Positions 3,574 to 30,624 of a DNA stretch of 64,000 bases are shown one piece after another (position 1 is the stretch's first letter; every line of letters begins with the position of its first letter). The position numbers and the translations under genes were made by a program. Where the stretch lies: positions 930,001 through 994,000 of the forward strand of contig CATNEN010000015.1 in NCBI GenBank assembly GCA_950097015.1. The letters run 5' to 3'. Under the pieces are notes generated by a model that made no database searches, was not told the DNA's origin, and saw only the letters and a program-made list of their open reading frames with translations. Source of the DNA: Macrostomum hystrix. Lineage: Eukaryota > Animalia > Platyhelminthes.

Positions 3574-6500
3574 ATGTCTGCTAGACCGAATCAATGTATC
3601 TGCCAAATCTGCAACTGTGGGTAAGACAAATACAGTACAAAATTTAATCATCTCATTTCTCTGGTGTTTATTTCATGAAAATTTAAGGTTTTATTTCCAA
3701 AAATATGTAAAACCGGTAAGAAAAATATTAAAGATAATCATGCATTTATGTAAACAGCTACTTATCTGATTTCATGCTTAAAAAGTAAACCACATATTTT
3801 GACTTTATTACATTACTTAAATGTAAATGATGGTATAAAAATCATTAGATTACACACGAAATTAAATTTATTATAAAATAAACAATGTAGTTATAAATAA
3901 CGCTAAGACTCAGAATATTATGTAAGCTTAACTAGATAACTCTACTACATAATAATATATGGTCATTTTTGTTTATATTTATAACTTTCAAAAACAAATG
4001 ATTCAAAAATGCGTACTTATAACTATGACTAAACCTTTAAATTTTTTATTAAACGTGTTGCTGTTTTAAAAAACTGAAGGTTTTCTATGTGATTGTAATC
4101 CATTTCTCTTTGACATCACCAGCCGTCACCGCTGCAAGGTGCACCCGAATCGACCAGTCCGCGACGGCCCGTGCCAGCTGTCTGAGTACGCCAACAAGTT
4201 CATCCCGCACCCGATGGTGCCCGTTGGTAGCTTCAAACCCACCGTGCGGGCGGCAGCCAGCGAGGGCCCCCTGTCCGACAAGACTACCCACCGAGTGGAC
4301 TTCGTGCCGCACCCGCTGGACCGGCCAAAGCCGCACCAGGCTGAGCAGTACCGCCCGCCCTCCGGCCAGTTCGACGGCGTAACCATGTACACCAAAGAGT
4401 ACACACCCAAGCGGGGCGAGCGAGCCGCTGCTGCGAAGCGCGAGGTGAAGCGCGGCGTGGCCGGGGAGTTCCGCGGCGAGCCGACCTACAAGCATGACTA
4501 CCGCCGCTGGGACATGCCCAAGCTGGAGCGCAGCCGCACAAACCCGCAGTGGGAGCCCAGCAAGACTCCATTCGCCGGCTTGCCGACCTACACCACAGAC
4601 TATGTGGCGCATCCCGGCCGGTGAGTCTTTGTCATTGTGCTCGAGTTCCGTGTGTTCAGACGCGGAGAAGTTTACTAAAAATGCAAGTTCTTAGAAACCT
4701 CCACTTAAACAAATTTTCTATGTAAAAGTCCACATAAACTTACACAATGTAATTTAGCATGAAAAAGTCATTCATCGATTTCGTCTTCAGCATGATCGAA
4801 TAGTAAGACGCCAATATAATTTAAAGGTAATACCTAAATCTGACTTTTACACAATCTACAGTAATAATGGATTTTATTTCCTTTGTTTAAAACTTTTTAG
4901 CGATAATTTTAATGTCTCAAATTCCTCCTCGTGTATTCACAGTGTGACTGGTTCAATGTGTCACTTAAAATCACGTGATTACGTCGAATTTGGCCCCGAT
5001 GGGCTTGTAGCCCAGTGATTAGAGCGTCGGACTCATGATTTGAAGGTCAGGGACTCGATTCTCGACTACACTAGAACAATTAGCAAGACACTTAACTCAG
5101 TGTTGCTTTACTTCACCCAGCTGGTAAATGGGTACCAGCATTAGCTGAGAGTGGGTGTGGCGTCCCCCACCCAGTCCATGGACTGAAAATCTGTACGCAG
5201 CCTTCAGATGCGCCGAGCATTAGCTGTGGCTGTGCTGTGGGCACGTCTGGCGATGGCGAAAGCGATGCGTGAATGCCAAAATAATATCTTCACATTCTTG
5301 CAGACCTTCCACCAGCTGCAAGCCAAACGAGGTGGCTCGCATGTCTTCAGAGCCGCTGGAGAGCCAGACCGACTACCGGCAGAGCTACGTGCCGCACCCG
5401 CTGGAGCGCCGGCGCGAGAAGGAGCGCCAAGCCTGGGCCCGGCCCTCCGCGCCTTTCGACGGCCTGAGCACCTTCGCACGCGACTTCACACCGAAATCGG
5501 CCGCGGCTCGGATCTCCATGAAGCCGGACGCCACAGCGTTTGCGTCTAACGCTCCGTTCAAGGACGACACGACCCATCGCGTGGACTTCAAGCCGTGGGA
5601 GCTGCAGCGACACGCCGTGCACAAAGCCGAGCCGTACGTAGCCCCGGAGGGCTGTCTGGACGGCACCACGACCTACGCCAAGGACTATCCGGCCCATCGG
5701 GTTGTCAAGGAGACTTTTTCGAGGCGCGTCGAGCGAGGACTGCCGAGTGGAGAGTTCAACGATTCCACTGACTACAAGTGAGGCCAATATTAGCATTGGC
5801 TCTATGTCCTCTTATTTTATGGAGCTATTGTGCAAATTTTATACCATTGGCTTTTAAAGACGCATAGATAATCGCGAGGCAATTTTCAGAAACTCAGAAA
5901 AATGTTGGATTTTATATTATTTTTTAATTTAGTTTCTTTCCTTTGGCATTGACAGGAGTTCTAGGTAATACAGGAAGTCGTCAATGCTCGTTGACAAAGT
6001 CCATTTTGTGTTGGCAACCGCAGAGCTTGGAAACTGACAGAATGGGTTAGGGTTAGTTCAACGGAATAAATAAGTAGAGCGTCGATGGAAACAGAGAGGC
6101 TTCGCATGCAGGCCTGCAAGAATGCCCTGCCTCATTGTTGACTGAGCTGGCCCCACTAAAATAGAAATGAAAATAGCAAAGTTTCGCCCTGTGTGGCATG
6201 GACACAAACTGGGCAATCAAGGCCTGCCCACCTTCACCCACCTCCTGTCCATTTCTCAGCCCCCGTAGCTTTTCAACTTGCTCTTTTGTCTTCGGCTCTT
6301 CATTTTTTGTCGCTAGCTAGCCCACACTCGAGAATGTCTCACGCCTTCTATACTATTTTAGCTGTTCTAGAAGGGCTTTTGCCTAGGATTTTCTCAATTC
6401 AGGTGTCTGGGTTCTTAATGGATGGGCCACTAGTGGCCGTGTGGTCCGAAAAACAGTCTATTTTGCCTGCTTGAAAGTCTTTTGCTACGAATTTCAGTTA

Positions 6501-7522
6501 GACTACTAACAGTAGCGGAGCAAGCTTATAAATTAAAGCGAAAATTGCTTTCCCAGGGACAACTACAAGAAGTGGGCGCTGGCTGGTCGCGAGCGGGTCG
6601 GACCGAACCAGACTTACCAGCCCAACGCGGCGCCATTCGAGGGCCAGAGCACCACGGCCAGCCACTACGTGCCGCACCCGATGGACGTCAGGCGCAGCTT
6701 CAAGCCGTCGCAGGACGCGGCCAGGACCGAGGGACCATTCGACGGGACCACGCTCTACCGGTGAGTGAAATAGCCGAAACTGTTTTCTTCAAACCGAAAC
6801 TCACAAACTCACATTCGAGCTCAGAAACCTTGGTACAAGAGTCGCAAAGAGAGAGTGAGAAAGTAAAATTATAATTGTAAAACTATTCAATATGCAAAGC
6901 GATTTGTTTCCAGAAAACAAAGCCAATTTCGTTTTAAAAATCAAAACTCTTGATTTCAAAATTATAACAACTTAATTAAATTGTCTAAATCCTTTAATTA
7001 GTAGTTCTGCGAATAAAGTCTTATTTAAAAGCCACATCAAAAAGTTCTGCCCATTCCGCTGAACCCTGAGCGCATAAGCATAAGGTGTATTCGTTTGCCC
7101 CAAAATGTGACCTCGCTACGGAATCGAGCTCAGGGACCTTGGAGTGAGAGGCAAACACGTTAGACAGGTCTGGCAATCGTCCCCCAGACGAAAAGCAATA
7201 CCCAAAGTCAGCAGTTTAAAAAATCCAAGCACCTATCCTGGTATTCGCACAAAAGTTCTCACATAGAAGATTGACCCAATTATAATTTGAAGCACCTGAA
7301 AGCAGTCGTGAAACTTACCCTCCCCCATCGACCTGCAGCATGGAGTACGTGCCGAAGCACGTGGAGCCGTGCCCGGCGGCACTGCTAGACACACAGGCCT
7401 CGCGCTATCGCTACCAGGCCACTGACGACATCGGGCACAAGTTCTACGCGACGAAGAACGGCCAGGCGGAAGCCACTGTCACGGACCTCAGCACAGGCCA
7501 GCTGGTGACAGCTGTCAACTGA
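3574..7522 (+). CDS. SAXO1/2-like: Stabilizer of axonemal microtubules (SAXO/FAM154 family), ~468 aa, 5 exons
   Basis: Exons 3574-3620, 4123-4620, 5304-5777, 6557-6760 and 7339-7522, all GT-AG, phases match, total 1407 nt. The N-terminus MSARPNQCICQICNCGRHRC matches the SAXO CIC..C.CGRH.C motif. Repeated Mn-type motifs follow (F.G.TTY..DY..H/W, e.g. GEPTYKHDYRRW, GLPTYTTDYVAH, DGTTTYAKDYPAH). Confidence 0.92.
5001..5275 (+). mobile_element. tRNA-derived SINE, family B (in SAXO intron 2)
   Basis: tRNA-like head, then a core GCAAGACACTTAAC...TTCACCCAGCTGGTAAATGGGTACC, then the palindrome CAGTCCATGGACTG. Colinear with the copy at 55264-55560. Confidence 0.75.
7062..7172 (-). mobile_element. tRNA-derived SINE, family A (degenerate copy in SAXO intron 4)
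   Basis: GGAATCGAGCTCAGGGACCTTGGAGTGAGAGGCAAACACGTT closely matches bases 86-126. Confidence 0.65.
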
Positions 7523-8629
7523 ACTGGACTAACTGACGGTCTGTTTCAGTTGTCAGGTCGTCCAAGAGGCAGCGAATCGGCAGGATGACATATTTTTTCT
7601 ATTCAAATTGGCGCGCAAATTTTATTGACTGAAATATGTTCGCTGGAGTTTGCTTATCGAGCTCGTTGCTTTTGGATCTAACCTGTCTGCTAGGCTCTCC
7701 CATATTACTAAGCATTCCCTCTTCAGTCAGTCTACCTCTTCTCTCTTCTGCTCTCTCTTATTCTCTCGTTAAGTTTCTATTTTTAACCTTGATATTACGC
7801 AATTCGGCACTGAGACAGTTAAGTGAGTGTCATGTGCTCTCGACGTACGCCATGAGTTGGATATATAGAAGTTTTCTATTTAGTTACCATTTGCTTCTGT
7901 TTAACTGTATTGACGTCAAAATTCAGTTTTTTAATCTAACTTGAACTAATTTGTCTTGCTGGATTCCGAATTTTATTCCACATTTTTACTTTTCATTGAT
8001 TTTTCGTTTCCTGAAGAGGAAAATAATGATTTTTTGATTTTCTATGTGGTGCACTCTGAAATTCGCCCAATCTTTGACTGGAATCTGCAGGACTTTCCTC
8101 GAATTGCTTGCTAATTTCAGTTCTCCCATCGCTGAATAGAACCAATTCTATTTTGGCTTCAGACCATTGACACAGGGAACCTGCGCTGTCTAAATGCAAT
8201 TGCAATTTCCCTACTTTCTAAGAAACCACTGCTTCGCTTCAAATTTTTGTCGTGTGTGTTCTGATTCCAGGAAAAGTCTATTTATTCACAAAGTACCATA
8301 GTTATTGTGTACTCGTAACAACAATAGTTAACATGAATACAGTATTTTGCAGCATGACGCATAAGCTGGCTGGCTTATTGATTTCTGATTATTGCCTCGA
8401 AAACTGAGTAACTCAACACTTGTCGACGTGTTTCTCTTAATTGGCTTGTTTTGTTAGAATCTGCACGAATCCTGATGCCGTATGAAAACTGCAAGCTTAG
8501 ACATCAACCAAAGGCAATGCCAGATAGTCTACCTAGCTACTTGCTATGACTGGATGCAGCACTGGTGAGAAAATAACAATTTACTTCGGGTGTGTCATAA
8601 GTAATGTCACTGAGGGTAAAACAGACCAA

Positions 8630-9718
8630 CTAACAATCGCAGATGAACGAAACTGTATCAATCAACAACATAGTGTCCCCAATATCAATCACCCTCTGGC
8701 AGTGCTCGTACAGCTTCTCTACCTCAGCCTGCAGGTGTTTTTCCTCCAGCTGTCGGAACCAGTGCAACGCGGTTTCTTTGACCTCATCATGGTTTGCGAA
8801 ACTTCTCTGGGAAAAGTCTGCCTTCAGCCATTTAAAGAGAAACCTGTCGCACAAGTTGAAGTCTGGGCTGTAGGGACTCTGCCAGAGCAGATTTACTCGC
8901 CGTCCAGCCAGAAAATCCGAAACAGCCTGACAGGTGTGGGGCCGTGCGTTGTCCATCTGCCACAGAACTTCGTTCAGGTGAATCGGGTTTGACCGGAGCG
9001 TGCGCCAGAGGTTCCCAGTGTGTCGGACAAAGTCGATGAAGTACTGGCCATCGACCTTGGTGTTTGGCGGAGTTGTACAGATGGAGACTCGTTTGTTTGG
9101 CGTGAATGCCACCAGCAGCATGGTCTTCTTGTCTGAGATGGACCTCCTGGTCACAGTCAGCCTGGAGTCCCCAGCTCCCAGCCAGCAGCGATTGTCTGCC
9201 TTGCTGCTTTTGCCATCCAGGTGGAGCCAGGTCTCATCCTCAACAACCAGGCAGTTTAGGATGTCATCCAAGCCCCGGCTGCTGAACACCTTGCGGATCT
9301 GATTGGCGCAGTTCATACGGGCCTGACGTTGGTCCGCAGTGAGGTCATGGGGCACCCAGACCAAGCAGACGTTTCGGAGATGGAGATCCTCTGTCAAGAT
9401 GCGATGGACTGTCTTGAAATCAATCTCCAAGCAGTCCGCTAGCTCCCTGACAGACTGCCGCGGGTCTTCCTTGACCAGGTCGCTGATGACTTCGATGTTC
9501 TCTATTGTCCTGGTTGAACATGGTCGTCCAGATCTGGCGGCATCTCCCAATTCGAACCCAGGATCAGTAAAGTTCTGAAACCACCTGTAAATTGTCCTGC
9601 GAGTTGGGCAGTTGTCTGGCAGTGTGTTCCGGAGATCCTCCTCTACTTCAAGTGCAGATTTTCCAAGCTTGAAGCGAATGAAAGCGTAGAACTGGATGTG
9701 CGTCTTGTCGTGATTCAT
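8630..9718 (-). CDS. mariner transposase, ~362 aa
   Basis: N-terminal HTH regions, WVPHDL linker, catalytic VEDETW, QMDNARPH and SPYSPDFNLCD, with 34 residues between the second and third Asp. First ATG is at 9718. Confidence 0.93.
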   Translation of the reverse strand: MNHDKTHIQFYAFIRFKLGKSALEVEEDLRNTLPDNCPTRRTIYRWFQNFTDPGFELGDAARSGRPCSTRTIENIEVISDLVKEDPRQSVRELADCLEIDFKTVHRILTEDLHLRNVCLVWVPHDLTADQRQARMNCANQIRKVFSSRGLDDILNCLVVEDETWLHLDGKSSKADNRCWLGAGDSRLTVTRRSISDKKTMLLVAFTPNKRVSICTTPPNTKVDGQYFIDFVRHTGNLWRTLRSNPIHLNEVLWQMDNARPHTCQAVSDFLAGRRVNLLWQSPYSPDFNLCDRFLFKWLKADFSQRSFANHDEVKETALHWFRQLEEKHLQAEVEKLYEHCQRVIDIGDTMLLIDTVSFICDC

Positions 9719-10696
9719 GTTGAGTTTTGCTCGTTGCAAAAAGAAGATTTCATCGCGTTGCGCTTGCTAAATCTGATTAACAAATTCTTGCGACAGTTTT
9801 GGCCATAGACATTAAAATTGCTGCTCAGGTGTGGTGGCAACTTCTCAATAAATGTACTTTCAGAATCTATATATATAAAAGTGAAAACTCTGTCTGTGTG
9901 TGTGTGTGTGTGTGCAACCTTTTGTCTTTATAGACGCCGAAACCGCTCAACCAAATCGCACCAAACTTTGCACATACCTAAAACCACCTACGATTTTTGA
10001 GCAGTTTTTTGCACTTTTGAGCAGGAAGGAAATGATTTTTCGGGAATTTGAGTAGCCTATTGCACTCAGCGTAGGTGGTTTTAGGTATGTGCAAAGTTTG
10101 GTGCGATTTGGTTGAGCGGTTTCGGCGTCTATAAAGACAAAAGGTTGCACACACACACACAGACACACAGACAGAGTTTTCACTTTTATATATATAGATA
10201 GGCTACTCAAATTCCCGAAAAATCATTTCCTTCCTGCTCAAAAGTGCAAAAAACTGCTCAAAAATCGTCAAAAAATCACTCAATTCGACATATCGTCGCC
10301 CCACTTTGTCAGATTTTCTCCAAATTTGATCCACTTACACTTTACATGTTTTCCAACAATGCTGTCAATTTTGAACATCTCTACTCAATCCAGAGCAAAG
10401 CTGCATCATCTCAAAGTGAGTCACTTTTTGTTTTCCGAGGACAGCCACCCCAACTCCCCTCCGCCACTCTGCGGGCCAAATTTTATTACAGCCACCCCCT
10501 CCCTTCCCCGGGCGCCGAAGCCCCAGACTGTACATTGTATTTCAAGCCGTGAATGTACACAGCCCAAACCCCTAGACTGTCTACTGGCCCCCAAGCAGCA
10601 CTGAGACTGAGTGCGGTGAGTGCGGTGGCGTTCCAGTGCGCAGGGCTCTCCGGTCGATATTTCTCTCCAGCCAGCCTGGGATAGAAGAAAGAGAGA

Positions 10697-11308
10697 GGCT
10701 GGTCAGAGAGGGAAATTCTGTGTCCTAGAAATGATGCCGCCAACGAAATTAACTACCAACTGCTTCAGGAGTTGCCAGGTGCAGTTTTCACCTACAAGTC
10801 AATTGATACAACGTTGACTGATGACACCGCTGTGGAGTATCCTGTTGAGTTTCTGAACTCTCTAGATCCTCCTGGAACTCCATCGCACAACTTGCAGCTG
10901 AAAGTTGGGGCACCAATTATGCTCCTCCGCAACCTGAATGCGCCAAGGCTGTGTAACGGCACCAGACTGATAGTCAGGCGGCTCTTCCCACACGTGATTG
11001 AGGCCACGATAATGACTGGATATGGCAGAGGAGAGTCTGTGTTCGTTCCCCGGATTCCAATTATCCCCACGGACCTGCCATTTCAGTTCAAGCGACTGCA
11101 GTTCCCTGTGAGAGTGTGCTTTGCGATGACTATTAACAAGGCTCAGGGACAGTCGCTGAAGGTGGCTGGCATCAACCTGGAGACTCCTTGCTTCTCGCAT
11201 GGGCAGCTTTATGTCGCCTGCTCCCGTGTTGGAACTCTAGCTGGCCTATTCATTTTCGCACCAAGGGGAAGAACGAAGAATGTGGTGTATCCCCAGGCCT
11301 TGAGGTGA
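10697..11308 (+). pseudogene. Helitron RepHel C-terminal PIF1-like helicase fragment (~200 aa, open frame)
   Basis: WSEREILCPRND...LKVGAPIMLLRNLNAPRLCNGTRL...FKRLQFPVRVCFAMTINKAQGQSL...FSHGQLYVACSRV...TKNVVY are hallmark Helitron helicase motifs. No Rep domain is present. Confidence 0.9.
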
Positions 11309-11460
11309 CTCGCAAGCAATTAATAGAAAAGTAGTCACGAATTGACCTTGACCTGTCTAACTCTGAACTGTGAAACAGTTTAATTTTGTTTCTTTGACAT
11401 TGTTATTGTTATGCCATGGCTATTTTCCTTATGTATACGCGTGTACATGCATACTGTATA

Positions 11461-11733
11461 CAGAGGCAGATTTAGGGGGGGGGGCGGGGGGCAGTCGGCC
11501 CCCTAAATTTTAATCATGGGAATAAGATGCCCTCACCAGGGGCGCCAGTCGCAGCACTGGCGCCCCTTTTCGGCCGCTGGCGCCCCTTTTTCAGCCGCTG
11601 GCTCCCGTTTTCAGCCACTGGCGCCCTTTCTTGGCTCCTGGCGCCCTTTTTCGGCCGCTGGCACCCCCTCTGTGATTCTCATGGCGCTCCCCTGACAGAC
11701 CGCCCCAAAACAAAATTCCTGGATCTGCCACTG
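11461..11733. mobile_element. hAT-type MITE (273 bp) nested in the Helitron
   Basis: TIRs CAGAGGCAGATTTAGG / CAGTGGCAGATCCAGG (reverse complement of the right end). Perfect 8-bp TSD ACTGTATA at 11453-60 and 11734-41. Confidence 0.9.
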
Positions 11734-12512
11734 ACTGTATAGAGGAGTGGCTAAGAGACATGTTTCTAAAGAAGTAATCAAGAGGGGGCTGTTTGGACAA
11801 ACTTTTCACTTATTTTTTACTTAAAACGCCCTTAAACAAACTCTTCACTTTTCATTAATGCAGTAAATAAATAAATGGTGACCTTCACTATAAAGTTAAT
11901 ACAGAGACGTGAATTGCTTACTGCTTTGCTTTAAATTTCTGCCCCAAAAACAACGGGCAAAAAAAGCTAGTATAATATATTTGGATGATTATTGCTTTGG
12001 GTTCCCGCACAACAACCACAGTGACATTACTTATGACACACCCGTAGTAGATGTTCATTTCGTTGCAAATAAATGTGAAGCTTCACGCGCATAAACATCA
12101 AAAGTGGTCTGAAAAACAAATCCTTCGGAAGCGAAAACTGTTTTCAGATTTCAAACATTTCAATGTATTTGGACTCGTGCACTGCACCCTGTGTTGCAGT
12201 ACTAAACTGGATGCTAGACAGTCCACAGTTGCTTTGCACTGCTATGCAATCACAAGGACTGAAGAAAGTACTCCAGCACTTAACGGATTATTTGTCACGG
12301 TTTCAGCATAAACAAAATCGTTAAGTCCTTGCGAACGCAAAAGGTGCTGCGGTGATCACCCCATGCCTAACAGAGAGTATTTAACAGTAGTTCAGACACG
12401 GACTATCCTGACTGCCTCACACTCTGCACAAACTGCAAACGCATAGTTCTAAACAGAAAGCTTTCAAACTAAATCTCTGTGCAATGCAATGAAATCCTTC
12501 AGTGGGCAAGTT

Positions 12513-15275
12513 ATGGAAACTGCAGCGCTGGCTCTGCTGCTCTGCTCGCTGGCAGCTGGCCAGGTCTCCCAGTGCGCAGCCACAGGCTCACCGGAGCTCC
12601 GCTTCGTCGCCCAGCTCAATATGAACGGCTGCGCGCTGTTCGTGCACGACACGGGAGCGAGCGACGGTCCTCACTTGGCAGTCGAGCCGGTCATGTGCGT
12701 GACGGACAGGCTTGAAGGCTTGAGTCCACTGTATGACGCAGTCACTGACGTGCTGTACCTGAGTATTCCTGTGCTGCTCAGAGATGCTGGAATGCTCGCA
12801 GCAGCTCAGCGCCATCTGGAGCACCTGTCACCGAGATCTGTGAGCTTCCTGACCATTTCAAGCATCCAAGCATCCATGGAAACCAACGTCACAGTGCAAG
12901 TTGATAGCTTCATTTGGAGCCCTGACGAATCTACGGGTTTCATCCGACTGCGAAGCCGAAGTGTAGTCGACATTTTCTTGTTTGCGTAAGTTCCCAGCAA
13001 TCAGCTCACGCTGCTAGGAATATAATAGAGTTCGATTGGATTTTAAATCGCAGCTCACGTCCTTTTCCGCAGATCAAAAATTCGATCAGCTCCATCGGTG
13101 GTGTTAAACAATCTGGTGCTGACCGCATCGACTCGTGTGAATGACACCTGCCATCAGCTCAGCTACCGCCCGATGCTGCAGAACCAGACCTTCTTTGATG
13201 CGGAAGAGGTGAGACAAAAATACTCCCTTCCGGCATGCCGTCAGCTGCGGTTCATCCGCTCGATCAACCTCGAGAACTGCACTGCTCGAGTGCACCAGAG
13301 ACTCGACATCAAGGGCCACTTACTCATCGAGCCTCTGCTCTGCCACAACATCAGCAGCTTGAGCAGCGAGTCAGTCATGTATGACTACAGCCGTAGCATG
13401 TACTACCTCAAGCTGCATGTAGTGCTACAAGATGAGGCCACACTGGAAGCTGTGAGGTCTCAGCTTGCTGATCTGTACCCTCGCTCGGTCACCTTCATGA
13501 AACTGTGGAGTGCTCAGAGCATTGTGAGCTCGGCCTTGAGTTCTCGCTTCTCAATCGGTCCGCTGATGGTGTCTGCAGACTGGAAGACTGCTCAGCTGCA
13601 GTTGTTCTGCAGATTCGAGAAACAATGCCATGTGCTGAGGTCTGTGTAAAGATGTACTTTCTTAGGATAAATGAAAATACAAAAAAATTCATTTTTCAGG
13701 TCCGGAATAATTTTCGAGCCAGTCAACTTGTTTCGCCACATTGGGTGGCAGGTGACGTCGATAGTGAGTCAGCTGTGCCTTGCCAAGTCGGACAAGCCGC
13801 GGTTTCTGTGGAGAATGAGACAAACTGGAGCAGAGTTTCAGCAGGCTCGGTTCATATGTGATCTCCCAAACTGTGATCTCCCCTCGAAGTTTCTCAGCGT
13901 GAAGCAGGTTGGCCGGAACTTCATCAAGATCCAGCAGAGGACCACCGGGAGTGTCAGTTTCCAACGCACCTGGGCTGAGTATGAGGCGGGGTTCGGCGAT
14001 GAGACAGACTTCTGGATCGGTGTGTGAATTCGTCTGCTTTTGATTTCCAAATTATGAGTAAAGAGGAAAAGTGTGTTTGGAGGCGAGTTTAGCTGTTGAG
14101 CTGAGTTAAAAAAGAATCGTAGTGGTAAAATGAGGTGTTAAAAAAGACAAGAAAATTGGAAAGTAATCTCTTGCAAGAACAGGTGGGAGAAGAGATTTCT
14201 GTGGCTAATGGTTGATTGACCAAAGCAAACAAGCTAGAAGCTGCGCGAGGTTCGACCCCTATTTTTGTGTGTGACTAACCGAAAGCATTGATAGGTTAAA
14301 GGCCACCATCAGTCATAGATGATGTCATATAACCACTTTTTTCTTCAATGAGACTGACTGACCATGTGGCGAGAATAGTCTTGTCCATATCTTCTTTTGA
14401 CGTTGGGGCAGGCTACTGGGTTGGTCAAAATAGATGAAAGCCTTTGGTTTCCTGGAGCACGGGTAACTTGAACGGATCTGTCGAGAGCACCCTTGTGGTT
14501 CCCTATATCTAGGTAGGTGCATCTTCAATCTTCAATGGACTCTCTAAATCTAATAACTTTTGCGTTCTCAGGGGCTTGTATTAGAAAACAAGTTCCCTCC
14601 AAAACAGGTTTGTTCCAGTTGAGCTGAAAAACTCAGATTGTAGGAATTTGATCATGAGACAGCTTAATATAATAGCGATGTGAGAGTACTAGTGTTACCT
14701 TGGCTTTCGTTTTACTGTATTCTTATATAGTTAGATTATTTACAGTCTGGTCAGTCCCGGTCTACGCAAGCCGCTTCACAGCAAAATAAATTAATCAATT
14801 ATCAGCTGAATCTGGCCATTCACATCAGCGCCTCCGAATTCTGTCCGACCCCGCAGGTCTCTTCGCCATCCACTCGCTGAGCGCAGGCGGTGCCACACTC
14901 AGAGTGGAGATGGAGCTGTTGAATGGGACTGAGCTGCATGCTGAGTATGCTGGATTCCAGGTTGGAGACGCCAGCACCAAATATGAGATGACGTACCGAG
15001 AGATGCTGAGGGACAGGTCCAATGCTGGATTCGATGCCATGGTGACTCACAAAGACATTCGCTTTTCCACCATGGACAGCGACAATGACAAAAACAGCTA
15101 CGGATCGTGCTCGAATACTTGGGGCAAGGGTGGGTGGTGGTTCAACCATTGCTATTACTTCAATCCAAACGGAATCTTTCCTTCAGGACAGACAACAGAC
15201 TGTACCTACATGGCGACACAGCTGAGGTCCCAGTGCTTGTCTCTCCGCTCAGTGCGGCTTCTGCTGGAGCTGTGA
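12513..15275 (+). CDS. Secreted fibrinogen-related protein, copy 1 (signal peptide + 2 unrecognised repeat domains + FReD), ~592 aa
   Basis: Exons 12513-12985 (alternative ATG 12489), 13073-13639 (or 13645), 13700-14019 and 14857-15275, with consistent phases. Signal peptide METAALALLLCSLAAG. FReD motifs IQQRTTGSVSFQRTWAEYEAGFG..FWIG, FSTMDSDND and GGWWFNHC..NPNG. Confidence 0.88.
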
Positions 15276-16307
15276 TCAGCAGCAGCTGAGGAATCGGCCA
15301 AGGACAGCAGAAAATTAAACTTCTCCGCTGCAGCCAGTGGCAACTAAATTCTGAAACAATCTGATACAATAACCGCATGAGTACAGGAGGAAATTACTAT
15401 TTAATTACCTTACTATATGCAAAATTGAACTAAAAGTCAGAGCTCAAAAATCTAAATGACTAGATGAGATCATACTGCTGCGGGATTTAGTAAGATCGGA
15501 TTAAATATACTCAAATTTATACTCACACTGCTCATTCACCAGCTGTTTTAGTATTGATCTGACGCTATTGAAGACAACCATGATAGAAAGAATTTTGCTG
15601 TATGCCTCAGAGACCTCGGGAGCTGGGGAGTCTTGGAACAATGGACCATTGGACAGAAGTCTAATTTAAAGAATAAGTTTTAGGGATTGTAAAGCCATTC
15701 TCAAAGTAAATCCAAACTACTGACAGCAACGACTCCCGTTCAGAACTGGGTATGTTCCGACTTCTTTACTGCATACAGAAAATACGTACTCAGTACTGGG
15801 CTTCACTCTCTAATCGACAAGACTCTATTATCTCGAAATTAGTAACCGATTGGACTTATGAACAGCAGCGTGATGCAAAACTGTCTCCTGACCACAAAAC
15901 AGAATCCATAAATCTTCATAGGTGAACTTTGAAGCAGAATTTACAAGATTCTGGAGACAATGGGCTGAGAAATCTGTAAAACTTAGTTATTTTTAGTTTA
16001 AGACAATAGAAAAATATTTGCATTTTCTCTGTCCCGAAATTAGAAGCATCCTAACCAACTTTCGTCTGGGAAAACACAATTTATCGTGTGGAACATTTAG
16101 GTAAGACCTAGAATTCTTTACGGTGATAGGACTTGCACAAAGTGTAGCTCAGAAGTAGAAAAAGAAGTCCATTTTCTCTTAAAGTGTCGCTGGAGTCCAT
16201 ACAGTTCAAGCAGGGAGACATGCACACACCTAATGGTACAAGAGAGTAAAGAACTAACAGGAAAACTTATGGACAATTTCATAAAAAGACAATTTCAAAT
16301 TAAAGAA

Positions 16308-16553
16308 AGGTCCACTGTCGGATTCGATGCTATGGAGCACCACAAAGGAGCGCGCTTCTCCACCATGGACAGCGACAATGACAAAGTGCTCGAATCGTGC
16401 TCGAATGCTGGGGGCAAGGGTGGGTGGTGGTTCAATAATTGCCATTTCTTCATTCCAAACGGAATCTTTCCTTCAAGAAAGACTTTAGACAGGGCCTACA
16501 TGATATGGTACACCATCTCTCTCCGCTCAGTGCGGCTTCTGCTGGAGGTGTGA
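16308..16553 (+). pseudogene. Orphan 3' half of a FReD terminal exon (third P-subdomain variant), followed by homologous 3' flank
   Basis: GFDAMEHHKGARFSTMDSDNDK...GGWWFNNCHFFIPNG...LRSVRLLLEV*. Homology begins abruptly at AGGTCC (16308). The upstream part of the tool's ORF is non-homologous. Confidence 0.8.
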
Positions 16554-18842
16554 TCAGCAGCAGCTGAGGAATCGGCCAAGGACCGCAGAAAATTAAACTT
16601 CTTCGCCGCAGCCAGTGGCACCTCAATTTCCACTGTGCTGTAACAATGTATTCACCAGCCTTATCTGAAACAATAGCTGCAATAATATTCAGAAAAACTT
16701 CCCATTTAATCAGCTTGCTGAATGCACAATTAAACTTGTGAATTGATTATATTGCATGGTTAATTCAGTAAGATCGGAGTAAATATATTTAACTCTGTGC
16801 TCACGCTGCTCAATAACCCGTTTGTTTTAATGAGATTTAAGACTTTCGAAGACAGCTCGAAACCGAAGTTAGCGAACAATACAATGAAGTAGCTCACGTC
16901 TTGTGAGAAAGCCCAATAAAATGGAAACCTGTATCATATGAGAGTCCTTCTTTAGCTGTGAGTAAGGAACTCTGCCCTTCTGAAATAAAAGCCTGCTCAG
17001 GCCACCTGGAACTCATTAGTCTGAGCATTTAATTGCACATTGACTGCTCATGACGCTAATACTGTCTTGATTAAAACCGACAATCACGCGCATCACGCTA
17101 CTGAGGCTCAGTAGGTAGAGTGGAAAATCAGTAATCAAAGTCTATCAGAAATCCAATGCTGCCAATAAACTGATCCAGCTGCCAAAGCGCTGAGGAAATC
17201 TGGTGATAAGCTACACTTATCCTACTACTCACCGCAAACAGCAGTAGTATGATGCCAATTCATTTCTCAGGTCTCCGAATTATCGTTCTAATAATTAATA
17301 ATCTCAGAACGCACTGTTAAAATACGCAAAGGTATTGAGTCAAACAAAACCGACAATATCGCCCTTAGAAACAGGAGCACCAAGGTCTGAAAGCCGCCAC
17401 GCACAAAGTTCAGCATCTCATTTTCAACTCAGCTGGTTCTGTGAGCTCTCAAATCACTCAGCCCCAGAGGTAAAGAAAAGAAGGCTCTCAGATGTCAGCG
17501 ATTGATTTTCGCCTGCTTGGCAAATCGAATGCTGCTCGGAGTTCAAGTAGTTTTCCTCAAGCCACTTGCACCGAAAGCCTGACAGACAGGCCACTTGCAT
17601 GACGTCACCGCTTCGAGTTCCAAGCGTCTAGTTGCTGGGGGCAGACTAAAAAAAGACTGAAATTTATTGTAAACAAAATTTCTGTGCCCGCACAACATCG
17701 CCGATGCTGGCAGTAGGATTATCCCTGCATGGCGGGAGGCTACGCATGGATTAAGCTCACCAGAGTCACGCAAGCGGTCGCTCAGGTGTTGCTGCGCTGA
17801 ATCTGTTGGCTGGCATGACACACGAGATCCGCCTATTTGCTTATCCCCACTGCCTCACTGCTACAGGGCACTGCGGTGCTGCACTCGGCAGTCGGGTCGC
17901 TGAGCCGATAATTGCATGTCCTACCCCGAGCCGCCACCACCCACCCTCTGCGGTGAGTATACTGTATTATGGAGCTCTGAGTTGAGAAGCTGGAGAGACA
18001 AGCACCACCAAACCCTCATTTTCCTGCTGCCAGTATGGGCTGACTGGCCCAAATTTCCTTAAAATTTATTATTAACTGTAGCTGAAACATGCAAAATGGG
18101 GGTTTGACGTGGAGTTGTCGCTGTATTTCTAGATTCAGAGCTCTATGAATGTATAGATTCGACTCTTCTTTGTACTCAAGTCGCCCATCTGAGCAAACAG
18201 CCTGTGCCAAGCCCTACTAAACTCCCGTCCTGGCTAATGAGACATGGAGGCTCCGGTTTCGGGATCGTTCGGGATAGCCCAATCTTGTCTCGTCTAGTGT
18301 TTCTATATTTTTCATTTTTTATCCTTTCACCAAACGAGTCCTTGCTATAGCACTGCCTATGTCGAGCGTCGAGGTATCGCTTAAAAAACCGCTTTCCCGA
18401 CTGTCCGCAGTCATTGCCGGAGCAAGTTCAGAACCTTCGGAACCTTCAGAAATTATTTCAAATTTTTCTTTTTTTTGAGCATTGTTTTAAGCGTTATTCG
18501 ATCAAAAAATAGCTTATTTAATAATAATAATTATAAAACTTTATTCGACGAACACTGATCGAAACCGTTTTCTAAAGTGCTCGACGATTTTCTAAATGTG
18601 TCCAACGATTTTCTAAATGTGTTTAACAGTTTTCTAAATGTATCTACCGTGCCACATGTAACAGGAGATGTAACATGAGATATTTGTTGCCTTCTGGGCT
18701 GAGTAAAACGATGGACACATCGTTTCTATGCTATTTGGGGGCAATGGTTTCCTGTCAAAGAAAAAGGGCGAAAATTTCTTGCTGCGAGTTTGGTAGCCTG
18801 CAAGTAGCCTCCATTCTGGTATTATGGAGGTTCTCTTCTGTT

Positions 18843-19402
18843 TGGAGAACATTAGTTCTCTGCTGCTGGGAGAACATTAGTTCTCTGCTGCTGGGAGGAC
18901 ATTAGTTCTCTGCTGCTGGGAGGACATTAGTTCTCTGCTGCTGGGAGGACATTAGTTCTCTGCTGCTGGGAGGACATTAGTTCTCTGCTGCTGGGGGAAT
19001 TAGTTCTCTGCTGCTAGGGGGGAATTAGTTCTCTGCTGCTGGGAGGACATTAGTTCTCTGCTGCTGGGGGAATTAGTTCTCTGCTGCTGGGGGAATTAGT
19101 TCTCTGCTGCTGGGAGTATTAGTTCTCTGTTGCTGGGGGAATTAGTTCTCTGCTGCTGGGGGAATTAGTTCTCTGCTGCTGGGGGAATTAGTTCTCTGTT
19201 GCTGTGGGAATTAGTTCTCTGCTGCTGGGAGTATTAGTTCTCTGCTGCTGGGAGTATTAGTTCTCTGTTGCTGGGGGAATTAGTTCTCTGCTGCTGGGGG
19301 AATTAGTTCTCTGCTGCTGGGGGAATTAGTTCTCTGCTGCTGGGGGAATTAGCTCTCTGCTGCTGGGAGTATTAGTTCTCTGCTGCTGGGTAAATTAGTT
19401 CT
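18843..19402. repeat. SatB-1: 23-25 bp tandem array (ATTAGTTCTCTGCTGCTGGG+GGA/AGGAC/AGT)
   Basis: Tandem units are directly visible, and the unit is related to the 20985-23492 array. Confidence 0.95.
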
Positions 19403-19683
19403 CATGGCAAAACCAGCGTTTGAATCATTCTAAGCCAGAGTCTGAATCATGGCTAAACCAGAGCTTGAATCATGGCTAAACAAGAGTTTGAATCATGGCT
19501 AAACAAGAGTTTGAATCATGGCTAAACAAGAGTTTGAATCATGGCTAAACCAGAGTTTGAATCATGGCTAAATTTAAGTTTGAATCATGGCTAAACCAGA
19601 GTCTCAATCATGGCTAAACCAGAGCTTGAATCATGGCTAAACAAGAGTTTGAATCATGGCTAAACCAGAGTTTGAATCATGGA
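19403..19683. repeat. SatC: 23-bp tandem array (CCAGAGTTTGAATCATGGCTAAA), ~12 copies
   Basis: Tandem units are directly visible. Confidence 0.95.
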
Positions 19684-19844
19684 AAAAATTTTATTTTGTC
19701 ATTGAATCGAATTCTCTAACTTTTGATTTTGTTGTGTTATATCATCATAATGATATTCAATTAATTCATTTAATTGTTGTACTTCTCAATTTTCTACAAA
19801 AGCAGCTAATATAAATATTCAACAGGCAAAAATTTTCAACTGAG

Positions 19845-20400
19845 GATCATTATCAATAGGGAGTAATCATCAAATGAGGGATCATGATCAACTGGGGGAT
19901 CATTGTCAACTAAGGGGTCATTGTCAACCGGCGGATCATTGTCAAATGGGGGATCATTGTCAACTGGGAATCATCATCAATGGGGATTATCATCAATGGG
20001 GATTATCATCAAATAGGGGATCATGGTCAACTGGGGGATCATGGTCAACTGGGGGATCATTGTCAACTGGTGGAACATTGTCAACTGGGGGATCATCATC
20101 AACTGGGGGATCATTGTCAACTGGGGGATCATTGTCAACGGGGGGAACATTGTCAACTGAGTATCATCATCAATGGGGATTATCATCAAATCGGGGATCA
20201 TGGTCAACTGGGGGATCATTGTCAACTGGGGGATCATTGTCAACTGGGGGATCATTGTCAACTGGGGGATCATTGTCAACTGGGGGATCATTGTCATCTG
20301 GGGGATCATTGTCAACTGGGGGATCATTGTCAACTGGGGGATCATTGTCAACTGGGGGATCAATCTCATCTAGAGGATAAATGCCATCTGGGGGATCATT
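19845..20400. repeat. SatD: 18-bp tandem array (GGGGGATCATTGTCAACT)
   Basis: Tandem units are directly visible and explain the GDHCQL / NWGIIV / STGGSL pseudo-ORFs. Confidence 0.95.
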
Positions 20401-20429
20401 TTATCTTTAAGAAGCTGTAAATTCAGCTG

Positions 20430-20983
20430 TTTACCAGTATTCTTAAAGTGTTTATCAGTTTTCTAAATGTTTTTACCAGTATTCTAAATGTTTTTACCAG
20501 TATTCTAAATGTTTTTAACAGTATTCTAAATGTGTTTACCAGTATTCTAAAAGTGTTTACCAGTTTTCTAAATGTTTTTACCAGTATTCTAAATGTTTTT
20601 AACCGTATTTCAAATGTGTTTACCAGTATTCTAAATGTGTTTACCAGTATTCTAAATGTTTTTACCAGTATTCTAAATGTTTTTAACCGTATTTCAAATG
20701 TGTTTACCAGTATTCTAAATGTGTTTACCAGTATTCTAAATGTTTTTACCAGTATTCTAAATGTGTTTACCAGTATTCTAAATGTGTTTACCAGTATTCT
20801 AAATGTTTTTACCAGTATTCTAAATGTGTTTACCAGTATTCTAAATGTGTTTACCAGTATTCTAAATGTTTTTACCAGTATTCTAAATGTGTTTACCAGT
20901 ATTCTAAATGTGTTTACCAGTATTCTAAAAGTGTTTATCAGTATTCTAAATGTTTTTACCAGTATTCTAAATGTTTTTAACAG
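20430..20983. repeat. SatA: 21-bp tandem array (TTTACCAGTATTCTAAATGTG); a degenerate short version lies at ~18567-18645
   Basis: Tandem units are directly visible (FTSILNV pseudo-ORF). Confidence 0.95.
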
Positions 20984-20984
20984 T

Positions 20985-23492
20985 AGGGGAGGAATTACTG
21001 CTCTGCTGCTGGGGGGATTACTGCTCTGCTGCTGGGGGGGGATTACTGCTCTGCTGCTGGGGAGGAATTACTGCTCTGCTGCTGGGGGGAATTACTGCTC
21101 TGCTGCTGGGGGGGAATTACTGCTTTGCTGCTGGGTGGGGATTACTGCTCTGCTGCTGGGGGAATTACTGCTCTGCTGCTGGGGGGGAATTACTGCTTTG
21201 CTGCTGGGGGGGGAATTACTGCTTTGCTGCTGGGGGGGGAATTACTGCTTTGCTGCTGGGGGGGGAATTACTGCTTTGCTGCTGGGGGGGGAATTACTGC
21301 TTTGCTGCTGGGGAGGAATTACTGCTCTGCTGCTGGGGGGAATTACTGCTTTGCTGCTGGGGGGGAATTACTGCTTTGCTGCTGGGGGGGGAATTACTGC
21401 TCTGCTGCTGGGGGGGGGAATTACTGCTCTGCTGCTGGGGGAGAATTACTGCTTTGCTGCTGGGGGGGAATTACTGCTTTGCTGCTGGGGAGGAATTACT
21501 GCTCTGCTGCTGGGGGGGGGGAATTACTGCTCTGCTGCTGGGGGAGAATTACTGCTTTGCTGCTGGGGGGGAATTACTGCTTTGCTGCTGGGGGGGAATT
21601 ACTGCTTTGCTGCTGGGGGGGGGGGAATTACTGCTCTGCTGCTGGGGAGGGAATTACTGCTCTGCTGCTGGGGGGGGGAATTACTGCTCTGCTGCTGGGG
21701 GAGAATTACTGCTTTGCTGCTGGGGGGGAATTACTGCTTTGCTGCTGGGGGGGAATTACTGCTTTGCTGCTGGGGGGGGAATTACTGCTCTGCTGCTGGG
21801 GGGGGGGAATTACTGCTCTGCTGCTGGGGGAGAATTACTGCTTTGCTGCTGGGGGGGAATTACTGCTCTGCTGCTGGGGGGGGGGGAATTACTGCTCTGC
21901 TGCTGGGGGAGAATTACTGCTTTGCTGCTGGGGGGGAATTACTGCTTTGCTGCTGGGGGGGAATTACTGCTTTGCTGCTGGGGGGGGGGAATTACTGCTC
22001 TGCTGCTGGGGAGGGAATTACTGCTCTGCTGCTGGGGGGGGGAATTACTGCTCTGCTGCTGGGGGGAATTACTGCTTTGCTGCTGGGGGGGAATTACTGC
22101 TTTGCTGCTGGGGGGGAATTACTGCTTTGCTGCTGGGGGGGGGGAATTACTGCTCTGCTGCTGGGGGGGGGAATTACTGCTTTGCTGCTGGGGGGGAATT
22201 ACTGCTTTGCTGCTGGGGAGGAATTACTGCTCTGCTGCTGGGGGGAATTACTGCTTTGCTGCTGGGGGGGAATTACTGCTTTGCTGCTGGGGGGGGGGAA
22301 TTACTGCTCTGCTGCTGGGGGGGGGGAATTACTGCTTTGCTGCTGGGGGGGAATTACTGCTTTGCTGCTGGGGAGGAATTACTGCTCTGCTGCTGGGGGG
22401 AATTACTGCTTTGCTGCTGGGGGGGAATTACTGCTTTGCTGCTGGGGGAGAATTACTGCTTTGCTGCTGGGGGGGGGAATTACTGCTCTGCTGCTGGGGG
22501 AGAATTACTGCTTTGCTGCTGGGGGGGAATTACTGCTTTGCTGCTGGGGGGAATTACTGCTTTGCTGCTGGGGGGGAATTACTGCTTTGCTGCTGGGGGG
22601 GGGGAATTACTGCTCTGCTGCTGGGGAGGAATTACTGCTTTGCTGCTGGGGAGGAATTACTGCTCTGCTGCTGGGGGGAATTACTGCTTTGCTGCTGGGG
22701 GGGAATTACTGCTTTGCTGCTGGGGGGGGGAATTACTGCTCTGCTGCTGGGGGGGGGGAATTACTGCTTTGCTGCTGGGGGGGAATTACTGCTCTGCTGC
22801 TGGGGGGAATTACTGCTTTGCTGCTGGGGGGGAATTACTGCTTTGCTGCTGGGGGGGGGAATTACTGCTCTGCTGCTGGGGGGGGGAATTACTGCTTTGC
22901 TGCTGGGGGGGAATTACTGCTTTGCTGCTGGGGAGGAATTACTGCTCTGCTGCTGGGGGGAATTACTGCTTTGCTGCTGGGGGGGAATTACTGCTTTGCT
23001 GCTGGGGGGGGGAATTACTGCTCTGCTGCTGGGGGGGGGAATTACTGCTCTGCTGCTGGGGGAGAATTACTGCTTTGCTGCTGGGGGGGAATTACTGCTT
23101 TGCTGCTGGGGAGGAATTACTGCTCTGCTGCTGGGGGGAATTACTGCTTTGCTGCTGGGGGGGGAATTACTGCTTTGCTGCTGGGGGGGGAATTACTGCT
23201 CTGCTGCTGGGGGGAATTACTGCTTTGCTGCTGGGGGGGAATTACTGCTTTGCTGCTGGGGGGGGGAATTACTGCTCTGCTGCTGGGGAGGGAATTACTG
23301 CTCTGCTGCTGGGGGGAATTACTGCTTTGCTGCTGGGGGGGGAATTACTGCTTTGCTGCTGGGGGGGAATTACTGCTTTGCTGCTGGGGGGGGGAATTAC
23401 TGCTCTGCTGCTGGGGAGGGAATTACTGCTTTGCTGCTGGGGGGAATTACTGCTTTGCTGCTGGGGGGGGAATTACTTCTCTGCAGCTGGGG
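20985..23492. repeat. SatB-2: AATTACTGCT(C/T)TGCTGCT + variable G-run array, ~2.5 kb
   Basis: An 18-nt core plus G-runs of variable length, with strong G-strand asymmetry. Confidence 0.95.
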
Positions 23493-24442
23493 AGACACTG
23501 GTTTTTTACTGCTGAGGGGATAGTTTTCACATGTACTTAAGTAGCATTAAGCTGAGTTGTATCAAACGTAAGTTACTTGTGTAATTTTGCCCCGATGGGG
23601 CTCTTGGTGTACAGACTGAATGTCTCAGACAGACTATTTTTGTATTTAGTGAGAATTCAAATTTTCGTTGAATCGCAATCACATACGAGTGTATATTTGC
23701 AATCAGGGAAATTAATACTGACGACATGAGTTTTCATTTTTGTTTGCTTTCAGGTTTATTTTGTCCTTCTGCATTACACAATATTTTTGTTTGAACAGTA
23801 GTGCCCCCCAAAGGGGGGCTTAGTGTGCTAGTCTACTATATTAAAAATGAAATGCTTGGTTGGTCGGTTGTAATTGATTTTCTTCCAAACGGCTCAACCA
23901 ATTTTCACCATTTCTTCACCAAAAGATGCCAAATATAGGGAAAATTATACACGTATTTTTATTAAGCTTAACTTTATTGCTAAGGGGATTAAATATTCGA
24001 AAAACATGTTTTTTGACCATTTCAAAGGTCAAACTATCTTGGCTTATTGAGAATTTGATTCACTGACTGCCACTGAGTTAGAATTGCATCATCAACTTGC
24101 GCAACACCCACTAGCTGACTGAGTTAAAAGCCTGCACTCTGGAGACAAATTGGAAATAAATGTACACAACAAACCGCGAGACTGAGTGTACTCTATTTTC
24201 TTACTTCATTGTACAAAGCCAGAACTTTGAGAATTCATTTTATAAGGCTGATTTTTGCACCCACTAACCAACAGTCGGAATAGCCGATGTGTAGGCACTA
24301 GGAATAGGTTAGGCTAGGCTAGGGTTCGATTCTGCACTGCCTCAAAACATTTAGACTAATTTTCAGCCAGTAGTGATTAAAGATTTTTTTTATTTATTTT
24401 TTTCATTTCGTAAATAAAATATCATAAATCATAGCACACCGG

Positions 24443-30615: not shown

Positions 30616-30624
30616 GAAATCAAC

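Follow-up and report, generated by a model that had tools for sequence, protein, structure and literature searches.

The DNA analyzed here is a window of 64,000 nucleotides from the flatworm Macrostomum hystrix (positions 930,001 to 994,000, forward strand, of contig CATNEN010000015.1, hereafter contig 15, GenBank assembly GCA_950097015.1). It contains two genes, copy 1 and copy 2, that encode a fibrinogen-related domain (FReD), as well as an orphan half-exon of the same family. In these genes the last exon (exon 4) consists of two parts with different histories. The first part, which together with the end of intron 3 forms a constant core, is almost identical among the paralogues of a gene cluster, also at synonymous sites, whereas the second part, which encodes the P-subdomain, is strongly diverged and mosaic. 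Moreover, the 3' end of copy 1 is embedded in a segment that is not collinear with copy 2, and the missing collinear 3' end is encountered further downstream as the orphan. We consider it likely that gene conversion keeps the core alike, that the P-subdomain halves are old mosaic ends, that the 3' end of copy 1 was replaced as a whole, and that selection for different binding specificities acts on the resulting diversity. An earlier note, made from the sequence alone, had described the copies as near-identical upstream and hypervariable in the ligand-binding end, with three variants in one locus, and had ascribed this pattern to positive selection and/or the swapping of 3' cassettes.

Materials and Methods

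Coordinates are positions in the window unless a contig is named, and the assembly comprises 220 Mb in 42 contigs. Protein searches, alignments, and fold prediction were performed exon by exon, and exons were never joined into a spliced protein. Seventeen paralogue loci were retrieved and the exons were located in each of them. Proportions of synonymous (pS) and non-synonymous (pN) differences were obtained per region by Nei-Gojobori counts. Codon site models (M0, M1a, and M2a) were fitted to an alignment that is recombinant, using our own implementation of a Goldman-Yang-type codon likelihood; they are compared below by twice the difference in log-likelihood (2dlnL), and omega denotes the ratio of non-synonymous to synonymous change. 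The cut-off for Pfam family PF00147 was 22 bits. Equivalents of known binding-pocket residues were placed by means of the two cysteines and a HMMER alignment of exon 4 to M-ficolin and fibrinogen gamma. An AlphaFold2 model was made of the copy 2 exon 4 product only, on basis of a 25-sequence alignment, and this model was the query of the Foldseek search.

Results

A Change of Regime Within Exon 4

A tblastn search of the window with the last-exon peptide located copy 1 at 14859-15272, the orphan at 16299-16550, and copy 2 at 37681-38094, all of which match PF00147 (Fibrinogen_C), with 76.8 bits for exon 4 of copy 1, 83.3 bits for exon 4 of copy 2 (E-value 2.9e-23), and 49 bits for the orphan (8.7e-13). 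Exon 3 of copy 2 matches profile positions 28-77 of the same family with 29.2 bits. The amino acid sequences of copy 1 and copy 2 are 97.2% identical in exon 1, 96.0% in exon 2, and 83.9% in exon 3, which also contains an indel. In exon 4, the identity is 49 of 52 residues for codons 1-52 and only 53 of 86 for codons 53-138. At the nucleotide level there are 4 differences in the 156 nt before this break and 58 in the 258 nt after it (Fisher p = 3e-9), so the change of regime is not due to chance; over core codons 26-55 the two copies are 100% identical.

The three peptide strings that the earlier note had quoted for the divergent 3' ends are present in the sequence at their places. Its near-identical front holds for exons 1-2 and for the first half of exon 4 when copy 1 is compared with copy 2, and it did not mention the indel of exon 3. 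Across approximately 16 close paralogues, however, it is only the first half of exon 4 that remains near-identical, as exons 1-3 can be down to 35-50% (see below).

The synonymous sites change the interpretation of this pattern. Between copy 1 and copy 2, pS (with pN in brackets) is 0.02 (0.01) in exon 1, 0.04 (0.02) in exon 2, 0.11 (0.06) in exon 3, 0.03 (0.02) in the core, and 0.22 (0.22) in the variable half, which is an approximately eightfold rise of pS within exon 4 at an omega of approximately 1.0. Positive selection on recent duplicates, the conclusion that had been drawn from the near-identical front and the divergent end, is contradicted by these values. Synonymous divergence rises as much as non-synonymous divergence, and the ends are therefore older recombined segments, while the front was kept alike by gene conversion. 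An identical front with a divergent end is, on its own, no evidence for positive selection, and synonymous sites need to be checked.

The 3' End of Copy 1 and the Orphan Half-Exon

Self-comparison of the window revealed a segmental duplication, in which 8104-8586 and 12048-14054 match 34411-36915 at 95-96% identity, 14758-15350 matches 37580-38172 at 87%, and 16305-18439 matches 37834-40047 at 92-94%. The orphan is collinear with copy 2 at 37834-38097, and the duplication alignments therefore identify the orphan and all sequence downstream of it as the collinear partner of the copy 2 3' end. Consequently, three different P-subdomains are indeed encountered in the locus, as had been noted earlier, but the orphan does not represent an independent third variant. 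When the orphan was put in silico in the place of the copy 1 end, identity between the two loci was 94-100% in almost every 100-bp window. Some windows, most of them gap-bearing, were lower (77-92%), and the main exceptions were intron 3, which is unalignable, and approximately 200 bp of P-subdomain coding sequence at 82-90%.

At the left border of the non-collinear segment, identity between the two copies drops at 14054/14055 from approximately 96% to unalignable. The copy 1 intron 3 has a best paralogue match of 77-80% over part of its length only, whereas that of copy 2 is 87% identical to the p1134 intron 3 over its whole length. Similarly, the copy 1 flank at 15353-15576 is 89% identical to the 3' flank of p1134 and p1272 (type B), and a different flank (type A) is common to the orphan, copy 2, p1246, and p1365. 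The segment ends in a repeat (15574-16309) that has at least 40 genomic copies at 71-94% identity. Other copies of this repeat run at least 45 bp past 16309, and the junction between repeat and orphan displays a microhomology of 2-5 bp only. Because the repeat is cut before its shared end and joined with such short microhomology, the right junction is a non-homologous repair joint rather than the end of a retrotransposition event. A Pfam search of the open frames in a longer repeat copy yielded no domain, including no reverse-transcriptase domain. A donor search in the assembly found nothing above 85% identity to the coding part of the copy 1 cassette and nothing above 89% for its flank; the donor would thus be unsampled or lost.

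Judged by this map, the copy 1 intron 3, binding end, 3' flank, and truncated repeat (14055-16309) appear to come from another, unsampled paralogue lineage. The simplest reading is that a copy-2-like gene lost a stretch that began shortly after the start of intron 3 and ended at the boundary between core and variable half, and that 2.25 kb (14055-16309) took its place. The incoming segment would have consisted of intron 3, exon 4, the type-B flank, and part of the downstream repeat, copied from the other lineage, and would have been joined on the left within homologous sequence and on the right by a non-homologous, presumably repair-mediated, joint with the 2-5 bp microhomology. The old variable half would have remained 1.03 kb beyond the new stop codon, as an orphan that cannot be translated. 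The orphan was also considered as an alternative last exon and was rejected as such, since the only preceding AG is out of frame with exon 3 and the core strands are missing.

As a separate observation, the orphan junction (37828-37840 in copy 2, 15006-15018 in copy 1) is centred in the inverted repeat GGAC-AG-GTCC at the boundary between core and variable half; its arms are 4 bp and it may well be due to chance.

A Core Homogenised Within a Paralogue Cluster

The genome contains at least 137 FReD exon matches, and the close subfamily comprises approximately 16 copies on contig 15 (930-1445 kb) as well as copies on contigs 1, 3, and 38. In all contig-15 copies codons 1-52 of exon 4 are almost identical, even where exons 1-3 are at only 35-50%. 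The core DNA was found only in 19 FReD copies, at 95-98% identity within contig 15, 88-90% on contig 38, and 81% on contig 1; this confinement to FReD copies rules out that the core is a mobile element. The homogenised tract begins 7-100 bp inside intron 3.

When the contig-15 and contig-38 copies were compared in 66 pairs, pS averaged 0.077 for the core and 0.46 for the variable half. In pairs with a pS of 0.5-0.9 in exons 1-3, core pS is still 0.00-0.11 and the variable half is at 0.5-0.7; at a pS of 0.5, finding 0 differences in 36 synonymous sites has a chance of 1.5e-11. In the contig-1 copy, which lies outside the cluster, the amino acids of the core are kept (pN approximately 0.16) at a pS of approximately 0.6. 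Synonymous identity of the core is therefore attributable to gene conversion within the cluster and not to nucleotide constraint. Paralogues with saturated flanks that are identical at synonymous core sites, with this identity missing off-cluster, represent the pattern expected of concerted evolution.

Several other arrangements in the cluster deserve mention. Four pairs on contig 15 lie 97-138 kb apart (1134028/1272165, 1245724/1345638, 1202491/1319358, and 1236009/1333399) and have an identical or nearly identical exon 4, with 0, 0, and 2 differences in the three pairs compared, representing either very recent large duplications or redundant assembly. Approximately 2 kb downstream of p1365, a relic consists of a copy-2-like exon 3 and the start of intron 3 (locus L037, reverse strand, approximately 6740-7348), and downstream of p1423 there is a 45-codon fragment of exon 1 that is 91% identical to copy 2 (locus L043, reverse strand, approximately 5761-5895).

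Mosaicism of the Variable Half

The pairwise homoplasy index (PHI) test on the variable half of 8-9 shallow sequences was significant, at p <= 0.003 with windows of 30-60 nt and p = 0.008-0.03 with 100 nt, and maximum-likelihood trees differ among the thirds of this region. The best-matching paralogue of copy 1 switches every 10-20 codons, for example from p1346 (0.98, columns 96-110) to the orphan (0.90, columns 116-130). Within the latter columns, the best local match of the orphan is the adjacent active copy 1 cassette (0.90 vs. 0.79). Between copy 2 and the orphan, 31 differences were counted over 243 nt, where approximately 8.5 are expected from the flanks (p = 2e-9). About five of them are private to each sequence. 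For approximately 20 of the 31, the two states are both encountered elsewhere among the paralogues, which is what block copying would produce. In columns 119-133, copy 2 also displays a few changes of its own, most of them non-synonymous.

A further exchange is apparent in p1365, which in exons 1-3 is identical or nearly so to p1202 (pS 0.00-0.11). In the variable half its pS is 0.14 to copy 2 vs. 0.23 to p1202, and it has the type-A flank, as copy 2 does. The approximately unbiased (AU) test weakly rejected a clade of copy 1 and copy 2 (p = 0.035). Cassette swapping, one of the two processes that the earlier note had offered, is directly visible at the copy 1 locus and in p1365, and recombination, for which it had proposed a test, was significant by PHI in the shallow sequences.

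Fold and Binding Pocket

The AlphaFold2 model had an overall confidence (predicted local distance difference test, pLDDT) of 83, with values of 93-97 in the core and 53-61 for residues 71-100. Foldseek matched it to L- and M-ficolin, tachylectin-5A (TL5A), and FIBCD1 with query-based template modelling scores (TMq) of 0.76-0.81 at a probability of 1.00. These matches, as well as the HMMER alignment to M-ficolin and fibrinogen gamma, bear out that the variable part corresponds to the P-subdomain.

In FIBCD1, the calcium site is formed by Asp393, Asp395, and the carbonyls of residues 397 and 399, the disulfide by Cys401-Cys414, and the acetyl pocket by Tyr405, His415, Tyr431, and Trp443, with Ala432 at its base; TL5A and L- and M-ficolin share conserved Tyr405, His415, Tyr431, and Ala432 with FIBCD1 (PMC3908420). 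The equivalents of the latter four residues are alignment columns 103, 118, 138, and 139. The scaffold is kept, as had been claimed, and consists of the pair of calcium-site aspartates, the cysteine pair, and the GGWW and PNG motifs. Both cysteines and the second aspartate are encountered in 15 of 15 sequences, including the orphan, and the first aspartate is missing in p1202 only. All four pocket positions, in contrast, vary, reading L-H-W-A in copy 2, W-Y-C-T in copy 1, G-H-R-A in the orphan, and R-L-Y-S in p1437. Moreover, the loop from the calcium site to the first cysteine ranges from 2 to 17 residues among the paralogues.

By this alignment-based placement, variable sites do lie at the canonical binding surface. 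The full acetyl pocket Y-H-Y-A was found in none of the paralogues, and the family thus does not qualify as acetyl-pocket lectins. Ligand specificity is probably diverse and worth assaying.

Possible Selection on the P-Subdomain

Omega is approximately 1.0 over the variable half in shallow pairs, although many scaffold residues are invariant. Comparison of M2a with M1a for this region gave a 2dlnL of 44.9 with 8 sequences and 53.4 with 14, with 16-22% of the codons at an omega of 4.6-5. A third or more of its codons have an omega of 0.00-0.09. The same pipeline yielded a 2dlnL of 0.0 for exons 2 and 3 and of 8.5 for exon 1. Fitting a separate tree to each third of the variable half resulted in a summed 2dlnL of 48.9 (6 degrees of freedom). 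After removal of copy 1 and gap-adjacent columns the value was 42.3, nearly all of which derives from the last third (columns 130-167, M0 omega 2.8). In the unfiltered run with 8 sequences, the equivalents of Tyr405, His415, and Tyr431 were among the 16 codons with a posterior above 0.8 (hypergeometric p = 0.02); none of the three was flagged in the strictly filtered run.

These results suggest a codon class with an omega of approximately 4-5 in the variable half, which is robust only in the last third, and they can be no more than suggestive, given a recombinant alignment and self-written code. Positive selection as proposed earlier is retained in this weaker form, with M2a preferred over M1a in the variable half and not in exons 2-3, subject to the same two reservations. 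The idea that variable sites cluster at the binding surface fares alike, in that the three pocket positions stand out in the unfiltered run and lose their flags under the stricter one.

Gene Structure and Surroundings

The features of the two loci are listed in Table 1. Each gene probably encodes a secreted protein, consisting of a leader, two N-terminal modules (one per exon), and a FReD that is split over exons 3 and 4. Exon 1 of copy 1 has a start codon and a second ATG at 12513, its donor (TTTGC/gtaagt) fits the frame, and its hydrophobic leader, as read by eye, is a putative signal peptide. On basis of splice signals, exon 4 of copy 1 spans 14857-15275 in phase 1. The exon 1 and exon 2 products of copy 2 matched no Pfam family at E <= 0.01. 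The modules encoded by these exons (12489-13645 and 35330-36486) have approximately 165-190 residues each and are approximately 35% identical to one another. When exon 4 of copy 1 was used as query, a word-based protein search returned a single match, a hypothetical protein of Macrostomum lignano at 62% identity.

The tail of copy 1 (15205-15245) reads YMATQLRSQC, vs. YMIWYTNSEL in other copies, and its best alignment to copy 2 requires deletions of 4 nt and 1 nt followed by an insertion of 5 nt. This looks like a compensated frameshift, by which the usually conserved tryptophan would have been lost and two cysteines gained.

Table 1. Positions of the exons, the exchanged segment, and the flanking sequences of copy 1, the orphan half-exon, and copy 2.
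Feature	Position	Strand	Remarks
Copy 1 exon 1	12489-12985	+	Open frame; boundaries approximate; first N-terminal module, without Pfam name; 97.2% amino acid identity to copy 2
Copy 1 exon 2	13073-13645	+	Open frame; boundaries approximate; second N-terminal module; 96.0% amino acid identity to copy 2; splice candidates found
Copy 1 exon 3	13700-14019	+	Start of the FReD (A/B part); donor ATCG/gtgtgt at 14019/14020
Copy 1 intron 3, part not collinear with copy 2	14055-14757	+	Left part of the putatively foreign segment
Constant core	14758-15014	+	Last ~100 bp of intron 3 and exon 4 codons 1-52; encodes B-subdomain strands
Copy 1 variable half of exon 4 (P-subdomain)	15015-15275	+	Stop codon 15273-15275; mosaic cassette of putatively foreign origin
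Copy 1 3' flank, type B	15276-15576	+	Unlike the flanks of copy 2 and orphan
Dispersed repeat fragment	15574-16309	+	Both ends truncated; right end joined to mid-exon
Orphan half-exon	16305-16553	+	Original variable half (codons ~52-138 and stop) of a copy-2-like gene; without core
Orphan 3' flank, type A	16554-18439	+	Collinear with the copy 2 flank; 92-100% identity to 38098-40047 in 100-bp windows
Copy 2 exons 1-3	35330-36878 (~35330-35826, 35914-36486, 36541-36878)	+	Open frames; collinear with copy 1 at 96.3%; donor 36878/36879
Copy 2 exon 4	37679-38097	+	Phase 1; acceptor cccgcag/GT; core 37679-37836, variable P-subdomain half 37837-38097 including stop
Copy 2 3' flank, type A	38098-40047	+	Collinear with 16554-18439

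The orphan 3' flank contains AATAAA signals at 16915 and 16984. Upstream of copy 1, a 3.46-kb insertion relative to copy 2 (8587-12047) carries a fragment of a Pif1-type helicase (10685-11305, PF21530, 1.7e-19) and is Helitron-like. The two duplicated gene units are separated by approximately 16 kb of nested tandem-repeat families with a strong G-over-C skew (18830-34410).

Discussion

In the history that we favor, gene conversion within the cluster would keep a core of approximately 190 bp (the end of intron 3 and exon 4 codons 1-52) almost letter-identical, and would also keep exons 1-2 alike between closer copies. The P-subdomain halves would escape this homogenisation and thereby represent older lineages, which exchange short blocks and each become a mosaic, and whole 3' ends would occasionally be exchanged as well. 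Selection for different binding specificities would keep the diverged cassettes and drive additional amino acid changes, above all after the PNG motif. Of this history, the anatomy of the loci, the pattern at synonymous sites, and the mosaicism are shown by the sequence, and the repair mechanism, the selection, and a putative lectin or immune function of the proteins are inferred.

Several observations weigh against this history or parts of it. As the assembly contains no cassette donor above 85% identity, we can only infer the direction and mechanism of the replacement at the copy 1 locus, and the same arrangement could have arisen by a deletion between tandem genes. With all 14 sequences, including the deep ones, the PHI test was not significant, and adjacent changes within codons could inflate it. 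The AU tests, performed on the 255-column alignment of the variable half, failed to reject clades of p1202 with p1365 (p = 0.20) and of copy 1 with the orphan (p = 0.21), so that the tree-based evidence for swaps is weak. Concerning selection, strict filtering left no significant signal in the first two thirds of the variable half and removed the flags from the pocket positions; the site-model code is our own and recombination is known to inflate such tests; and an overall omega of approximately 1 is also what relaxed constraint gives.

This last point leads to a neutral history, in which the core is converted, whereas the P-subdomains of a decaying family are relaxed or unconstrained and drift and recombine, with no adaptive diversification. 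It is consistent with the omega of the shallow comparisons, with the lack of a full canonical acetyl pocket in any of the paralogues, with the apparent compensated frameshift that removes a conserved tryptophan from the copy 1 tail, with several broken copies and relics in the cluster, and with the low model confidence for residues 71-100. We nevertheless regard it as unlikely: a third or more of the variable-half codons are under strong constraint by their omega values, at least 14 copies with intact frames retain the calcium-site aspartates, both cysteines, GGWW, and PNG, and M2a is significantly better than the nearly neutral M1a in this region, as opposed to exons 2-3 of these genes.

Positive selection on new point mutations, which would have driven apart the binding ends of recent duplicates and left the rest unchanged, appears improbable, and in its pure form it is already refuted by the rise of pS from 0.03 to 0.22 across the break at an omega that is not well above 1. 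The flanks and exons 1-2 at 96-99% identity, the class with omega above 1 in the site models, and the few unique, mostly non-synonymous changes of copy 2 would agree with it. However, neither the intron nor the 3' flank that accompanies the copy 1 end is that of copy 2, the states by which copy 2 and the orphan are distinguished mostly exist already in other paralogues, and the variable half is recombinant.

An extension of the favored history is that the 190-bp core serves specifically as a homology platform, prone to breaks at its 3' edge, for the exchange of P-subdomain cassettes, including silent relics, in the germline or somatically. Two hints would fit this idea. Firstly, two independent breaks lie within approximately 10 bp at the 3' edge of the core, namely the orphan junction (16305-16309) and a deletion in a paralogue on contig 38 (23288500-23294500). 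In the latter (at approximately 4040-4300 of this locus), exons 1-3 and the exon 4 core are kept and approximately 230 bp of the variable half are deleted; its homology to copy 2 ends at ATGCTGA, approximately 10 bp from the orphan start, and resumes at the last approximately 12 codons. Secondly, the orphan shares a local patch with the adjacent active cassette. Against it, the subfamily contains only one orphan of this kind, other relics break elsewhere, and for deep paralogues similarity fades gradually between codons 51 and 82. The odds are poor for such a platform, which, if true, would enable flatworms to vary the binding site of a lectin by means of cassettes at a useful rate.

Alternatively, two haplotypes or paralogues could have been joined artificially into the copy 1 locus during assembly, for which the pairs with identical exon 4 at 97-138 kb distance, being recent duplications or redundant assembly, might be cited. 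This we consider very improbable, given clean junctions, an 18% difference between the orphan and the copy 1 end, a foreign block and truncated repeat joined by microhomology, as is typical of a repair product and not of a read-overlap error, and an assembly of only 42 contigs. Finally, a retroelement that brought in the copy 1 3' end, either as a reverse-transcribed read-through transcript primed at a nick in exon 4 or with a long target-site duplication, is hardly credible. The inserted block does end in a dispersed repeat that directly adjoins the orphan, and the tail of this repeat has a Cys/His motif that may resemble the end of open reading frame 2 of non-long terminal repeat elements. 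However, the cut at least 45 bp before the end shared by other copies shows that no target-primed 3' end is present at the junction, identity of the two "duplicated" halves is only 82% in surroundings of 96-99%, the block includes an intron, and no reverse-transcriptase domain was encountered in the longer repeat copy. Both forms of this insertion were rejected on account of the truncation and the 82% identity.

Comparison With Other Fibrinogen-Related and Recognition Families

With ficolins, TL5A, and FIBCD1, the flatworm proteins share the predicted fold, the PF00147 match, the pair of calcium-site aspartates, and the cysteine pair equivalent to Cys401-Cys414. They differ in the pocket, as the four residues conserved in the former vary at all four positions in the flatworm paralogues, and in the loop of 2-17 residues between the calcium site and the first cysteine. 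The N-terminus is also different, consisting of two modules without a Pfam name; no collagen-like or coiled-coil stalk was detected, and in particular the collagen-like stalk of ficolins has no counterpart among Pfam families in the exon 1 and 2 products.

Fibrinogen-related proteins (FREPs) of the snail Biomphalaria represent another FReD-containing family in a lophotrochozoan, with a diversity that is ascribed in a review to gene conversion and point mutation (PMC12074976). FREPs are secreted, as the flatworm proteins probably are, and have immunoglobulin superfamily (IgSF) domains upstream of the FReD, whereas none was detected here in exons 1-2 by Pfam at E <= 0.01. Flatworm variation is germline and resides in the P-subdomain, behind a homogenised core within the same exon. 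The classic diversity of FREP3, on the other hand, has been described in the IgSF region and proposed to be partly somatic. No description of a Macrostomum FReD family was found in the searchable literature.

In vertebrate recognition families, including the MHC, KIR, and the chicken Ig pseudo-V genes, gene conversion homogenises framework parts, whereas the ligand-contact parts are diverse and mosaic, and by analogy the flatworm family may follow the same division between framework and contact surface. The chicken Ig system also offers a parallel in the silent fragment beside an active gene, with which it shares a local patch, as the orphan does with copy 1 in columns 116-130. It differs in having an array of donors instead of one orphan, and the flatworm variation has been read from germline sequence only. 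Conversion-driven diversification of recognition families is a well-known process, of which this locus is a clear new case. It provides a clean example of how an invertebrate lectin family may build germline diversity of its binding site, by converting the framework while old cassettes are kept and reshuffled, and it appears to preserve one complete cassette replacement with both junctions and the displaced half-exon.

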